A stretch of DNA of 64,000 nt from Piromyces finnis finn (taxonomy: Eukaryota > Fungi > Neocallimastigomycota): positions 806,001-870,000 of the forward strand of contig MCFH01000016.1 of NCBI GenBank assembly GCA_002104945.1. The letters run 5' to 3'. This document shows, piece after piece, positions 28,844 to 34,339 of this stretch. The notes under the pieces are model-generated. The model did not search any database, was not told the DNA's origin, and saw only the letters and a program-made list of their open reading frames with translations. How positions within the stretch are numbered: the stretch's first letter is position 1; every line of letters begins with the position of its first letter. The position numbers and the translations under genes were made by a program.

Positions 28844-29502
28844 TATTTATATATCCTATTTAATGATAAAAGAAATATTGTAAATTTTTTTTCTGATAAC
28901 CTTCAGAAAATATTATAAATAAAAAAAAAAAACATTAAAAAAAAATAAAATAAAAATAATATTTTTAAAGATTAAATATAAATTATACATTTTTCAAAAA
29001 AAATTTTATATAAAAAAATTATAATAAAATACTTATATACACACTTTAACTTTATTTTTTGTTTTTATTTTTTTTTATTAATTATTTATTTTTTTTAAAT
29101 GTTTTTAAATAGAAATGCAAAAAATATAATGAAAATGAATTTAATTTAAAAAAAAAAAAAAAAAAACTGTATATACATAATAGTTTTTTTTTTTTTTTTG
29201 ATTGATTGATTGATAAAAAGTTCTTTTAAAAAAAAAAAAAGTTACCCTTTTCAATTAAAATAAAATATATATAAAATTAAATATTTAAAAAATGTTTCTT
29301 TTTTTTTTTTGTGGAATTTATTTTTTTCGATTTTTAAGAGTTGATCCATTCTCTAATCAACCTTATTTTTTTTTATGCCATATTTTTCGAAAAAAATATT
29401 ATCCACACCACAAAGATTAAAAATTAAAATTTGTTTTTAGTAAAAGAAAAAATATTTATAACAAAACAAGCGAAAAAGATTTCCACTATTTGAAAATCTT
29501 TT

Positions 29503-30867
29503 TTAATTCAAGTTTTTGCTTTGTTCAGCAGCAATGGCAATTTTAAGAAATTCTGTAGTTTCAGTATTGGTATATAAAATCTTACTCTTTTTGAAACCGT
29601 TGAATTCAGAAGCAGCACTAATAGTGTAGGCACCCATTTCATCAAAATATAACCAATCACCAACATCTAATTCTGGTAATAAGGTATTTTTGCTTAAACA
29701 ATCAAGAGAATCACAAGTTGGGCCCCAAACACTACAATTGAATTCAGTTTCTCTAGTCTCACCATTGTCAAATAAAAATTGACCATTCTTACATAATGGC
29801 TTTGGACGAGGATGTTGATGATCAAACATAATACTGTTAAAACTACCGTAAATACCATCATTAATATAGTACATAAAAGATGGATGATCATCATTTCCAA
29901 CAATACCATCATCAGATCCATCACGCTTAACAATACGACGAGCAATAATATTAGTAGCTATAGTGAAAGCAGAAGCAGAATAATAACGTCCTGGTTCAGC
30001 AATAACTCTAACATGTGCAGGGAAATACTTATCAACAGCAGTACGAAGAACTTCGCATACTTCCCCAAATGAAATGTTTTCATTATCGGATCCTGGGAAA
30101 CCACCACCAACATCTAATAAAGTGAAATCAAAACCAAGTTCTTTACCAATATCAAAGACGTTGCGAGCAACGAGAACAGCATCCCTAAAAGAAGAGGAGG
30201 CAAAACAACCACTACCAACATGGAAACTAACACCAATAACATTAATACCTAATTCTCTTGCCTTTTCTAATAATTCACGAGCAGCAGATGGAGAGGCACC
30301 AAATTTTGAACTAAACTTACAAAGAGAGTTTGAATCATCAATTAAAACTCTTAAAACCATCTTTGCAGATTTGTGATACTTCTTAACCTTATAGAGTTCA
30401 TCAACATTATCAAAAGTCATCATTTCAATTCCCTTTTCTGAAGCAAAACGAATGTGGGAATTTTGTTTACATGGGTTGGCGTAAATGATCTTACTTGGTG
30501 GTACACCATAATTCAACATATTTTGCATTTCACCTCTACTAGCACAGTCAAAACCAGTTCCCATAGAAACCATAGTTTTTAAAAGTAATGGATCACCACA
30601 ACACTTGACTGCGTAGAATGGTTCAATTCTTGGTAAGTTACGAACCCATTTGATATGTTGACGAACAACTTGTCCAATATCACAAACAAAGAATGGATCT
30701 TCATCTTCGTTTTCTAAAATGTGGTTCTTGATAACATCTTGAACTGAATGAGTGCATTTAAATAAATTAGCAAAAGCATTTTGTGATTTTACATCTTCAC
30801 TCTTAACAGAGGTTTGAGCATTAATAGAAGCAATTATTTCGTTAGCAATACCTGGATATTCCTTCAT
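29503..30867 (-). CDS. SPE1: Ornithine decarboxylase (eukaryotic fold-III PLP enzyme), single coding exon
   Basis: 454-aa ORF with PFYAVKC (PLP lysine), FDCAS, IIYANPCK, GVSFHVGSG, DVGGGFPG, AEPGRYY, YYINDGIYGSFN, WGPTCDSLD (catalytic Cys-Asp) and MGAYT. Catalytic residues are intact, so this is not an antizyme-inhibitor-like dead copy. Confidence 0.95.
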   Translation of the reverse strand: MKEYPGIANEIIASINAQTSVKSEDVKSQNAFANLFKCTHSVQDVIKNHILENEDEDPFFVCDIGQVVRQHIKWVRNLPRIEPFYAVKCCGDPLLLKTMVSMGTGFDCASRGEMQNMLNYGVPPSKIIYANPCKQNSHIRFASEKGIEMMTFDNVDELYKVKKYHKSAKMVLRVLIDDSNSLCKFSSKFGASPSAARELLEKARELGINVIGVSFHVGSGCFASSSFRDAVLVARNVFDIGKELGFDFTLLDVGGGFPGSDNENISFGEVCEVLRTAVDKYFPAHVRVIAEPGRYYSASAFTIATNIIARRIVKRDGSDDGIVGNDDHPSFMYYINDGIYGSFNSIMFDHQHPRPKPLCKNGQFLFDNGETRETEFNCSVWGPTCDSLDCLSKNTLLPELDVGDWLYFDEMGAYTISAASEFNGFKKSKILYTNTETTEFLKIAIAAEQSKNLN

Positions 30868-31269
30868 CTTGATAACTTGTCTTCTTAATAAAATATATCT
30901 AAATTTTTGTTTTAAAGTTCGATTTGTATTATAATAGGTTTAATAAATTCCTTTATTTTCTCTTTTAAACAAAAAGTTTGAGAATAGGTTTTATTAATTA
31001 ATTAATTAATTGAAAATGTAGATCAGTATAAGTTTTTCTTTGCCGCGTGGTTGCAAAAGGCCTTTTTCTTTTTCTTTTGATACGACTTTATTCGAATCCT
31101 ATGTTAAAGAAAAAAGAAAAAAAAAGGCTTTAAAAAAAAAAAAAAACGTTTGTTTTTTTTAGCTAATTTTTTAAAATAAAAATATTATTACTTAATAATA
31201 ATTATTGATTTTGGCAAAAAATCAGTATTGATTTTCTTTTATCGTTGATAATAATTTAAACTTCTTTAT

Positions 31270-31350
31270 TTAGTTCAAAACCCAGGGGGGGGCTGAACAG
31301 TGAGTATTGAAATATAAGTATTTAACTTGACTAATTGTCGTGAAAGCCGT
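31270..31350 (-). promoter_or_regulatory. Putative non-AUG upstream ORF (uCC-like) of ODC ending in PPW-VLN*
   Basis: The minus-strand frame reads ACG GCT TTC ACG ACA ATT AGT CAA GTT AAA TAC TTA TAT TTC AAT ACT CAC TGT TCA GCC CCC CCC TGG GTT TTG AAC TAA. There is no in-frame AUG, and the frame is closed upstream by TAA at 31375-31377. The start codon choice (ATA 31359, ACG 31350, ATT 31335) is inferred. Confidence 0.7.
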
Positions 31351-31359
31351 GATCGCTAT

Positions 31360-31387
31360 AACCCTTCCTACTGTTTATAGAAGGGTT
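31360..31387 (-). promoter_or_regulatory. Stem-loop immediately 5' of the ODC uORF
   Basis: Plus strand reads AACCCTT-C-CTA-ctgttta-TAG-AAGGGTT: a 7-bp plus 3-bp stem with one bulged base, in otherwise very AT-rich DNA. Confidence 0.55.
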
Positions 31388-34339
31388 GGGTCAAAAATTT
31401 TTTCTTTAAAAAGAAAAAAAAATATTGTAGTTGTACCTATTTTGGTATAGTATAAAATAAAAAGGTAATATATATAAAATAAAATTTATATATATTTTTC
31501 TTATCTCAATAAATATTAAAAAAAAAAGAAATCTATGATTATATAATAAATTTAAATTATTTAATATATATTCATATATATGTATTAATAAACTAAAATT
31601 GTTTTTTTATATAGTTTTTTTTTTATCAAATAACTAATATATTTAAATATATATTGTTAATTCTATTTTAATTGAACGTTTTTTTTAAGGTAACTCAAAA
31701 AAAAAAAATCGTTTATATTTATCGTTTAGTGTTCGAAACTACTAAGTAATAAATCAAATGATTATTATTTTTTATTTATAATAAAAAATGCTGATAGTAA
31801 AAAAAAAAAAAAAATTAAAGACATTTGATTTAGTTTTTATATGATTTCCCCTGATTATATTTACAACTGAATATGAAATAAATATAAACTATATAATAAA
31901 TAAAGATTTCTATATATTAAATAAATATGGAAAAATATATAAAATTTTAAATCAAATAATATATTAATATTTTTACTAAGAAAAATTGAAATACTAAATA
32001 TATTTAAATAAAAAAAATCATTACATATAAAAAATATATCATTCTTCTATATTATTTAATTAATATTATTAATTTATATTAACAATATAAATATATATTT
32101 GAATTTATTCTTTATTCAATATATTATATTTATAATAACAGTATACTGTAAATATATGATTCAAAAGAATTTTATTCTCATTATTATATATTATAGTATA
32201 TTAGAGTATATTATTTTTGATATATTTAATGCCAAAAAAATTATTATAAATTAAAATAATAATTATTATTAATAATTAATAATCTATAAAATATAAATTT
32301 ATATATTATATAATCGACTGTAGGTTATTTTTTTATATTGAAAAATTTGATTATATATTAAAATTTTAAAAAAAAGCGAATATATAATATAAAAATTGGA
32401 ATTCATTACTAATATATATAATGAATCGATCCATTGAAAAAATATATATTATTAATATAATAAAAATAAATTGGATTTATTCCAATATATTGAAATATAC
32501 TACAATATATGAAGTATATTACACTAGTAATATTCTTTTTTTTTAAAGTTTTTGAAATATTGTAATATTTTAAAATAATTTCTGCCAATATATTATTTTA
32601 TTTTTTATATTATTAATAATATATAATAATATAAAAGCCTTTCTAATCTTATCAACCAATAATATATTGATAACTATAATAAATGATTGACATAAAAGGA
32701 AAGGAAATAATTACTATAGCATGAAAAAAACCAGATTTAAATAATTAATCCATTCTTTTTATTATGACTGTAAAAAGGTATTTTTTCCATATATTATGAA
32801 TAGGATTTCTATTTCTATTAATCATATAAACCTTATATATTAAAATAGTTAGTGGTGATCTCTTAAATAAAAAAGTCAATCATTAATAATGATTTAAAGT
32901 AAAGGTTATCATTCTAACTCAGAAATACACAACTCAATGCATGAGCAATGCCTCGTATACAACATTCTTAAATATACATTAAATAAAAAATAGAAATATA
33001 TAGTTCATAGAATTAACCAATAAATAAAAAGGGTTGATCTAACATACATGTATCCAATAATACTTATTTAAAATATGTGATAAAGTAAAAAAGTCACTCT
33101 TTACATAGATTTATGTAAAGCAGAAAAAATAGATTATAAAGACATCATTTTTAATTATTATTCAATTTCAATTGACTCCACTTTTTTTAAAAAAATATAA
33201 TTGAACAATATATTAATATATATTTTAATATATAATGTTTATCTTTATAAATGTTAAATATGTCATAAATAAAAAACTAATTGTCTAATTATTAATACAA
33301 AAAAAATTTGGCTAAAAAGGTTTGGTGTATGATTTTCCCAAAATAAAATTAGGTGACATTTTTATTTGACACTATTATAATGGGATTAATCTGAAAAGAA
33401 AGTTGTACTCATAAAAGTGATTGACTCTATATAGATCGAAAATATCTATTAATTCAATGTAAGTATATTAATTCTATGAAGAATAAATTGCAGCTATTAA
33501 TTATTTTTTTTACAATTATCAAATAGTGAACCTTGGTTAAAATCCACCTCTTAGCCAGTAACAATGCAAAAAAAATGTAAAAATAAATAGAATGATTTTA
33601 TTGGTTAGTAGTTTAATAATAAAAGTTAACACGTGAAAGTCAACAAAAATTAAATTTAAACCATTTTTAATTTACTTTATTATTAAATAATGTATACATT
33701 AATGTAAGAAATTAAATTGATTTGTATAAAGATAGTATTTAATAAAATTTTTTAAAGTACCAAAATTTTAACAAGAAAAAAAGGATTTATTAAACTTAAA
33801 AAACTTAAAATTTTTATTAATTAATTATTTCCATTATATATTTTAAAACTTTTAATTTAATTATTATTATAAATAAAATTTAAAATTGACAAGACTGTTA
33901 TTTACTATTTATCAAAAATAATAATAGTATTATTTTTCTACTCTAATAATATTATTCATTATTATTTTAATAAAAAAAAAAAAAAACTAAATAATTGATA
34001 TTTTAAAGTTTTCTACAATATTTAATTTCAATATTTATCAAAAAAAAAATTTGGCATTTATCCATTTATCCTTTAAATATATATAGATTATTAACCTTAA
34101 ATGTTAATAAGACCGACTTTTTTTTTAAAAAAAAAAAAAACTATATTCCTAATAACTTTTAATATTGAATGCCAATGATTTATCTAAAAATAAACCTATT
34201 AATTTATTATAACTGAATAATCTGAATAATCTACCTCCTCCTAATAAGGTTTATTTATATCACTATTTAATAAAACAAAAAAAAAATACAGAAGTTAAAA
34301 TAGGAAATGAGTTTATATCAAAACTGAATTTTTTTGGAA

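Follow-up and report, generated by a model that had tools for sequence, protein, structure and literature searches.

The mRNA for antizyme inhibitor (AZIN1) in vertebrates carries an upstream conserved coding region (uCC) that is initiated at AUU and terminated by Pro-Pro-Trp (PPW) (Ivanov et al. 2008, 2018, as summarised in PMC2811004, PMC9082881 and PMC11550727). In the model put forward for AZIN1, polyamines interfere with eIF5A-assisted synthesis of the PPW, whereupon the translating ribosome pauses, scanning complexes queue behind it, initiation at the weak start is increased and the main ORF is repressed (PMC9082881, PMC11550727, PMC2811004). A 2009 review listed uCCs in animals, Pezizomycotina, Basidiomycota and Zygomycota, argued for four independent origins and gave a shortest example of 22 codons (PMC2811004). 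A first-pass annotation of the DNA examined here had proposed a uCC upstream of an ornithine decarboxylase (ODC) gene, an element not known to it from this lineage. In agreement with that, our literature search gave no paper placing a uCC in Neocallimastigomycota, the gut fungi, or in chytrids, with the proviso that the supplements of the 2008 and 2018 primary papers may cover chytrids.

The window, meaning the whole 64-kb stretch of Piromyces finnis DNA that was analysed, encodes ODC on the minus strand and, ahead of it, a short frame that likewise ends in PPW. The main features of the two are as follows (an asterisk in a peptide denotes the stop codon).

29503-30867, minus strand: ornithine decarboxylase CDS, 454 aa, intronless, single copy in the genome (domain matches and alignment)
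31270-31374, minus strand: uCC, an AUG-less open frame of 34 codons plus stop that ends ...HCSAPPWVLN* (translation; conservation in six distinct lineages)
31348-31350, minus strand: candidate near-cognate start ACG (-3 A, +4 G), which would give a 26-codon peptide (invariant with its context in 11 sequences, 6 of them distinct)
31282-31290, minus strand: Pro-Pro-Trp codons CCC CCC TGG, presumed eIF5A-dependent pause site (sole PPW in the window; Pro codons vary between CCC and CCT only)
31270-31272, minus strand: uCC stop TAA, three codons past Trp (position invariant; TAG in lineage L009)

With the AZIN1 uCC this frame shares its place in the leader of an ODC-family mRNA, the lack of an AUG, a conserved near-cognate start in good context, a PPW a few codons before the stop, and conservation that is strongest at the C terminus. 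The two differ in host, which is antizyme inhibitor in the one case and, judged by its sequence, a catalytically intact ODC in the other, and in their starts, the likely ACG lying about 21 codons before the pause here and the AUU about 30 codons upstream in AZIN1. In addition, the present frame is situated 400-540 nt before the main AUG in an AT-rich leader of about 1 kb that has two extra invariant hairpins. The ODC uCCs of Zygomycota (as few as 22 codons; PMC2811004) are similar in being short, in having adjacent prolines near the C terminus and in their non-AUG start. The frame of Rhizopus (Zygomycota) ends ...GFPPWLS*. It has no residue similarity to the gut-fungus frame beyond the PPW, and its distance to the ODC AUG is 136 nt, compared with 402 nt here.

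Two further groups of regulatory uORFs are related in principle. The MAGDIS uORF of mammalian AdoMetDC and the small uORF of plant AdoMetDC also bring about peptide-dependent, polyamine-responsive stalling in the leader of a polyamine-biosynthesis mRNA (PMC2811004, PMC4505036), but they are AUG-initiated, stall at termination and lack a PPW, and no queue-driven near-cognate initiation has been proposed for them. The fungal arginine attenuator peptide (arg-2/CPA1 uORF) is likewise a conserved-peptide uORF at which a metabolite triggers a stall and scanning is blocked (PMC4505036); it differs in being AUG-initiated, in sensing arginine, and in its unrelated peptide and other host gene. On the sequences compared, what is distinctive of the present locus is the combination of a long AUG-free leader, wide spacing to the main AUG and two additional, predicted hairpins that are invariant.

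The upstream frame and its host gene

The first-pass annotation had described an AUG-less, PPW-ended frame about 400 nt before the ODC AUG on the same strand, in a GC-enriched island and with near-cognate codons, and all of this was borne out on re-examination. Translation of 31470-31270 on the minus strand gave a frame that opens after an in-frame TAA and runs for 34 codons with zero Met to the end ...THCSAPPWVLN*; the stop and the ODC AUG at 30867 are separated by 402 nt. GC content rises from 0.07-0.15 in the flanks to 0.34-0.35 over 31250-31399. The near-cognate codons are ATA (31359-57), ATC (31353-51), ACG (31350-48) and ATT (31335-33), the ACG having A at -3 and G at +4.

The PPW of this frame is the only one in all six frames of the 64-kb window, which has a GC content of 19%, and the block occurs just once in the 56.5-Mb, 232-contig genome. 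A repeat element could be rejected, as the search of the organism's own genome returned the uCC block alone. Searches of 30000-33000 against Rfam at permissive E-values gave sub-threshold chance matches only and no tRNAs were found there, and a known RNA family was thereby ruled out as the identity of the block. The window also has a C8 run at 31285-31293 (minus strand), seen in this species only, at which the +1 frame reads QPPPGF*. This +1 frame was discarded as a conserved frame, as it reads QPPPGF* in the window but QHPLGF* in the relatives, and the effect of the C8 run on it is probably incidental.

The ODC ORF was matched by the domains Orn_Arg_deC_N (E 4.7e-82) and Orn_DAP_Arg_deC (3.5e-27). 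Alignment to human ODC (1d7k) keeps FYAVKC, GFDCAS, HVGSG, GGGFPG, AEPGRY, NDG.YGSFN and GPTCD; the active-site positions checked in this way were human K69 (the PLP-lysine), D88, H197, GGG 235-237, E274/R277, D332 and C360/D361. The protein scores 450 bits against ODC and 328 bits against AZIN1. With the PLP-lysine and active-site motifs kept, it looks catalytically intact, as the first-pass annotation had judged, and does not look like an antizyme inhibitor. Its closest relatives are the ODC proteins of Anaeromyces robustus, Neocallimastix and Piromyces sp. E2 (78-89% identity), with those of chytrids at about 55-60%; the best matches thus fall in Neocallimastigomycota, with Piromyces nearest, and the anaerobic gut fungus suspected as host from the letters alone is confirmed.

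Conservation among gut fungi

To follow the frame across species, DNA was collected from the regions around ODC genes of relatives, together with metagenome contigs scanned with a back-translated C-terminal pattern; the strict form of this pattern returned three contigs and is no measure of prevalence. Every Neocallimastigomycota locus fetched has the same frame upstream of ODC. The eleven sequences represent six distinct versions or lineages, which include Anaeromyces, Neocallimastix, Piromyces sp. E2 and two metagenome contigs. Sequences with the frame are those of A. robustus (loci and contigs L002, L011 and L012-L017), of Neocallimastix (three assemblies and four contigs; L003-L006, L008, L010, L019 and L020), of Piromyces sp. 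E2 (L007) and of two further lineages (L009 and L018). Across lineages the distance from the uCC stop to the ODC AUG is 402-542 nt. One additional contig, L021 (a Logan contig of 46% GC), has no PPW in the 1070 nt upstream of its ODC; this ODC is 61% identical to that of the window and the organism is not known, so the contig was set aside as uninformative.

The uCC is without Met in every lineage, and each lineage has a TAA or TGA that closes the frame upstream of it. Its end, HCSAPPW.LN*, is invariant across the six lineages except for one non-synonymous V-to-D change. Within the last 11 codons, four of the five variable sites are synonymous, namely those in Ala (GCC/GCA/GCG), in both Pro (CCC/CCT) and in the stop (TAA/TAG), and these same changes are silent in the uCC frame but would alter amino acids in the other two frames. 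In lineage L018, exactly one codon has been deleted in-frame. Among the near-cognate codons, the ACG and its -3 A and +4 G are invariant; the ATT five codons later is invariant too, in a weaker context, and ATA (31357-31359) and ATC (31351-31353) are each altered in one lineage. The ACG at 31350-31348 is therefore most likely the start, on this pattern of conservation, with ATA, ATC and ATT as remaining candidates.

Outside the C terminus a different pattern was seen. Changes in the N-terminal and middle parts of the uCC are mostly non-synonymous, and over the whole frame third codon positions are 77-97% identical, as conserved as first and second positions; third positions of ODC are 68-78% identical. 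As third positions are no freer than the others, the uCC must also be under constraint at the nucleotide level, and the clean peptide signature is confined to the C terminus. Of what the first-pass annotation had proposed to check in relatives, retention of the PPW frame was thus found in all six lineages, and synonymous-biased conservation was found in the last 11 codons and not, as an excess at third positions, over the frame as a whole. Invariant columns make up 72-85% of the uCC and 75% of a second conserved block, hairpin 2 (see below), compared with 17-54% of other leader segments and 38% of the whole leader.

The ODC leader and its transcription

Two further features were placed in the leader.

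30868-31769, minus strand: minimal ODC 5' leader, from the conserved block AATAATAATCA to the AUG (5' limit inferred from orthologues)
31561-31575, minus strand: sole upstream AUG, opening the tiny uORF MNIY* in the weak context TATATGA (ATG count of the leader)

Contigs with the ODC leader start no more than about 40 nt upstream of the block AATAATAATCA (window 31769) in at least four species, and, as far as these contig ends indicate, the true 5' end probably falls 0-40 nt to the upstream side of 31769. The leader so defined is 902 nt long here and 910-1066 nt in the other lineages.

Evidence at the RNA level came from A. robustus, for which six Logan contigs from two run-accession series are without a 134-nt GTAAGT...AG segment inside the ODC CDS. 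Since a canonical intron is missing from them, these contigs represent cDNA. They match the genome colinearly from a point some 460 nt upstream of the uCC as far as the ODC stop, the uCC included, which shows that the A. robustus leader is about 1.1 kb, unspliced and inclusive of the uCC. Placement of the region inside an unspliced ODC mRNA, on which the first-pass annotation had made its proposal depend, is accordingly established for the A. robustus orthologue. For the window species itself, four runs that are probably RNA contained 55-67% of the words of 29400-32900 and a true metatranscriptome contained 45%, and we infer from leader conservation and AUG depletion that the uCC lies within its mRNA. 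A gap in the 3'-UTR of the N. californiae contig L010 was considered as an intron and rejected as the collapse of a T-run, and no RNA evidence was taken from it.

The same contigs bear on a different origin for the frame, as the terminal exon of a small protein-coding gene in its own right, with its AUG in an upstream exon. A gene model of this kind has been deposited for N. lanati (GCA_016946835.1; L003:1-2013), where a 59-residue gene runs from beyond the start of the locus to 2013, ending exactly at the uCC stop. Against this, the A. robustus cDNA shows no splice junction in the approximately 460 nt upstream of the frame, in the Neocallimastix contigs, which may derive from RNA or from DNA, colinearity extends over 380-440 nt, also with no splice junction, and leader contigs run on unbroken into ODC; in addition, a TAA or TGA closes the upstream frame in every lineage. 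We regard a separate gene as very improbable, and the N. lanati model as probably a spliced gene wrongly modelled around the uCC exon.

The leader, which in our preferred reading holds a translated uCC, is poor in AUG. Each lineage has one sense ATG per leader, where about 12 (12.3) would be expected from composition, whereas the antisense strand of the leader has 5-12 ATGs and the 902 nt further upstream in the window have 7. Only 0.4% of 902-nt segments of the window with equal GC have one ATG or none. This depletion of AUG indicates that the leader is under selection to be scanned, as the uCC mechanism needs. The single upstream AUG is at the same place in the leader of all six lineages, and its uORF reads MNIY*, MKIY* or, in A. 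robustus, MIYFSL*.

Predicted hairpins

Structure prediction gave two conserved stem-loops in the leader.

31360-31387, minus strand: hairpin 1, with an 8-9 bp stem (AACCCTTC / GAAGGGTT), predicted at -12 kcal/mol, z -2.3
31060-31128, minus strand: hairpin 2, located between the uCC and the ODC AUG, a long U-tract/A-tract stem-loop with 18 predicted pairs

Hairpin 1 overlaps the 5' end of the uCC: the upstream in-frame TAA is in its loop and its stem ends 9 nt before the ACG. Its arms are nearly invariant across lineages. For hairpin 2, the 111-nt stretch that contains it was predicted at about -19.6 kcal/mol, and its pairs are essentially invariant, as conserved as the uCC; Rfam gave weak miRNA-like matches only. 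Covariation or compensatory changes were sought in both hairpins across lineages and none were seen; the pairs are invariant, and both hairpins therefore stand as predicted structures.

Such conserved structure raises the question of whether the whole block might be an untranslated RNA or DNA element, i.e. a structured or protein-binding part of the leader in which the PPW frame is incidental. This would account for third codon positions that are no more variable than first and second over the whole frame, for the overlap of hairpin 1 with the 5' end of the frame, and for the equal invariance of non-coding leader blocks such as hairpin 2. It would not account for variable sites in the last 11 codons that are synonymous in the uCC frame only, for a stop kept as TAA or TAG, or for a single indel of exactly one codon; nor is there a matching Rfam family, or covariation in the hairpins. 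Together with the outgroup result described below, in which a PPW near a stop recurs ahead of ODC in four further fungal lineages whose nucleotides show no evident similarity, these observations make an untranslated element an unlikely explanation, though one to be taken more seriously than a separate gene.

Outgroup fungi

The 1.6 kb upstream of ODC was scanned in Rhizopus, Batrachochytrium dendrobatidis, Spizellomyces and Gonapodya. All four have a PPW located 2-6 codons before a stop, on the sense strand and 91-136 nt upstream of the annotated ODC AUG, in the following frames.

L022:2173-2364, Rhizopus: outgroup PPW frame
L023:2133-2402, B. dendrobatidis: outgroup PPW frame
L024:2134-2385, Spizellomyces: outgroup PPW frame
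L025:2032-2409, Gonapodya: outgroup PPW frame

Each of these 6.4-kb loci contains only 1-3 PPW in six frames. By inspection of the unaligned sequences, the outgroup frames have no evident nucleotide similarity to the window; the end of the Gonapodya frame, ...HTAAPPWNTR*, resembles the gut-fungus ...HCSAPPWVLN*. Recurrence of a PPW near the stop where the nucleotides have no evident similarity is what speaks most strongly for the peptide motif as the target of selection. The Batrachochytrium and Gonapodya frames hold in-frame AUGs and for this reason may not be non-AUG cases. Geometry also differs: in gut fungi 400-540 nt, which include an invariant hairpin, separate the uCC stop from the AUG, compared with about 90-140 nt in the outgroups.

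The outgroup loci also dispose of the simplest objection, that this is a chance open frame in a GC-rich patch. Nothing speaks for chance other than the shortness of the frame, and as the PPW is unique in the window and is found at a corresponding place before ODC in other genera and phyla, chance is left with a negligible probability.

Proposed mechanism and polyamine machinery

Taken together, the frame appears to be a genuine uCC in an ODC leader of about 0.9 kb, of the same kind as the AZIN1 uCC and the non-AUG, PPW-ended uCCs of animal and fungal ODC mRNAs, and we hold this with good, if not complete, confidence. All features by which the uCC family is defined at the sequence level were found; repression by polyamines and dependence on eIF5A would be expected by analogy with AZIN1.

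On that analogy, ribosomes scanning the nearly AUG-free leader would for the most part pass over the weak start, in all likelihood the ACG at 31350-31348, and the few that initiate would translate about 26 codons. High spermidine would interfere with eIF5A, such that a ribosome with Pro-Pro in place and Trp incoming would pause, and later scanning complexes would queue behind it. By our own arithmetic, the ACG precedes the second Pro codon, in the P-site, by 63 nt (21 codons). This distance is about two ribosome lengths and would fit a queue of two. A queued complex would then dwell on the ACG, leading to more initiation, a stronger block and less synthesis of ODC.

The components of such a circuit were sought in the genome. 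It encodes an eIF5A with an intact hypusine loop, STSKTGKHGHAK (L027:1381-1722), and an antizyme, and deoxyhypusine synthase matches two loci (C203 and C71). For deoxyhypusine hydroxylase (DOHH), a HEAT_PBS scan of the genome gave no match. A scan with HEAT_2 gave no candidate among the matches inspected, which were all but L032 and L035 in very long open frames, and this is a weak negative; the inspected matches looked by eye like a beta-adaptin, proteins of the importin-alpha and importin-beta types and an Rpn2-type proteasome subunit, and were rejected as DOHH. Deoxyhypusine hydroxylase needs oxygen. Its loss is therefore plausible in a strict anaerobe, and the sequence searches suggest that this oxygen-dependent hydroxylation step may have been lost here.

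The frame might instead be translated and repress ODC, but do so constitutively or through a signal other than polyamines, such as start stringency, eIF5A supply or mRNA decay after the stall. Stalling at PPW depends on eIF5A in general, the tiny AUG uORF and the two hairpins could carry other inputs, and with no DOHH-like gene found the chemistry of eIF5A may differ in this organism. On the other side, in all lineages examined the gene that carries the element is that of the rate-limiting polyamine enzyme; in AZIN1 the same motif responds to polyamines (PMC9082881, PMC11550727); and antizyme, the other polyamine sensor, has been retained. A polyamine-independent function is on balance improbable, if somewhat less so than an untranslated element, and a polyamine-responsive uCC remains our preferred reading.

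A PPW followed by 2-6 codons and a stop precedes ODC in Neocallimastigomycota, two chytrid orders, Gonapodya and Rhizopus. A more speculative proposal, which we consider possible but rather doubtful, is that the PPW uCC is ancestral to Fungi and perhaps shared with animals, in place of the four separate origins of the 2009 review, that the sensor of the anaerobes works with eIF5A that is solely deoxyhypusinated, given that the scans gave no gene for the oxygen-dependent hydroxylase, and that together with the 1-kb AUG-free leader and the two invariant hairpins it forms a composite regulator.

Implications and gene models

If the reading as a uCC is right, a translational polyamine sensor is extended to strictly anaerobic gut fungi and, by the outgroup loci, to chytrids, and this wider spread bears on whether the uCC sensor had a single origin or multiple origins. 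Should the anaerobes truly lack deoxyhypusine hydroxylase, they would offer a natural test of whether the circuit of PPW, eIF5A and polyamines needs the hypusine hydroxyl. The leader is also a candidate polyamine-responsive expression cassette for the engineering of these lignocellulose degraders. Annotators gain a concrete, unannotated functional element in Neocallimastigomycota, by which the odd 59-residue model of N. lanati would be explained.

Minor discrepancies were also noted in the ODC gene models of A. robustus. Its cDNA supports an ODC of 454 aa (P0004) with one 134-nt GT-AG intron (L002:3754-3887, also in L011), and the deposited gene models differ from this cDNA (P0005, 450 aa; P0009, 445 aa). 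The two A. robustus ODC loci are 99% identical over 5.6 kb and may be alleles or a recent duplicate.
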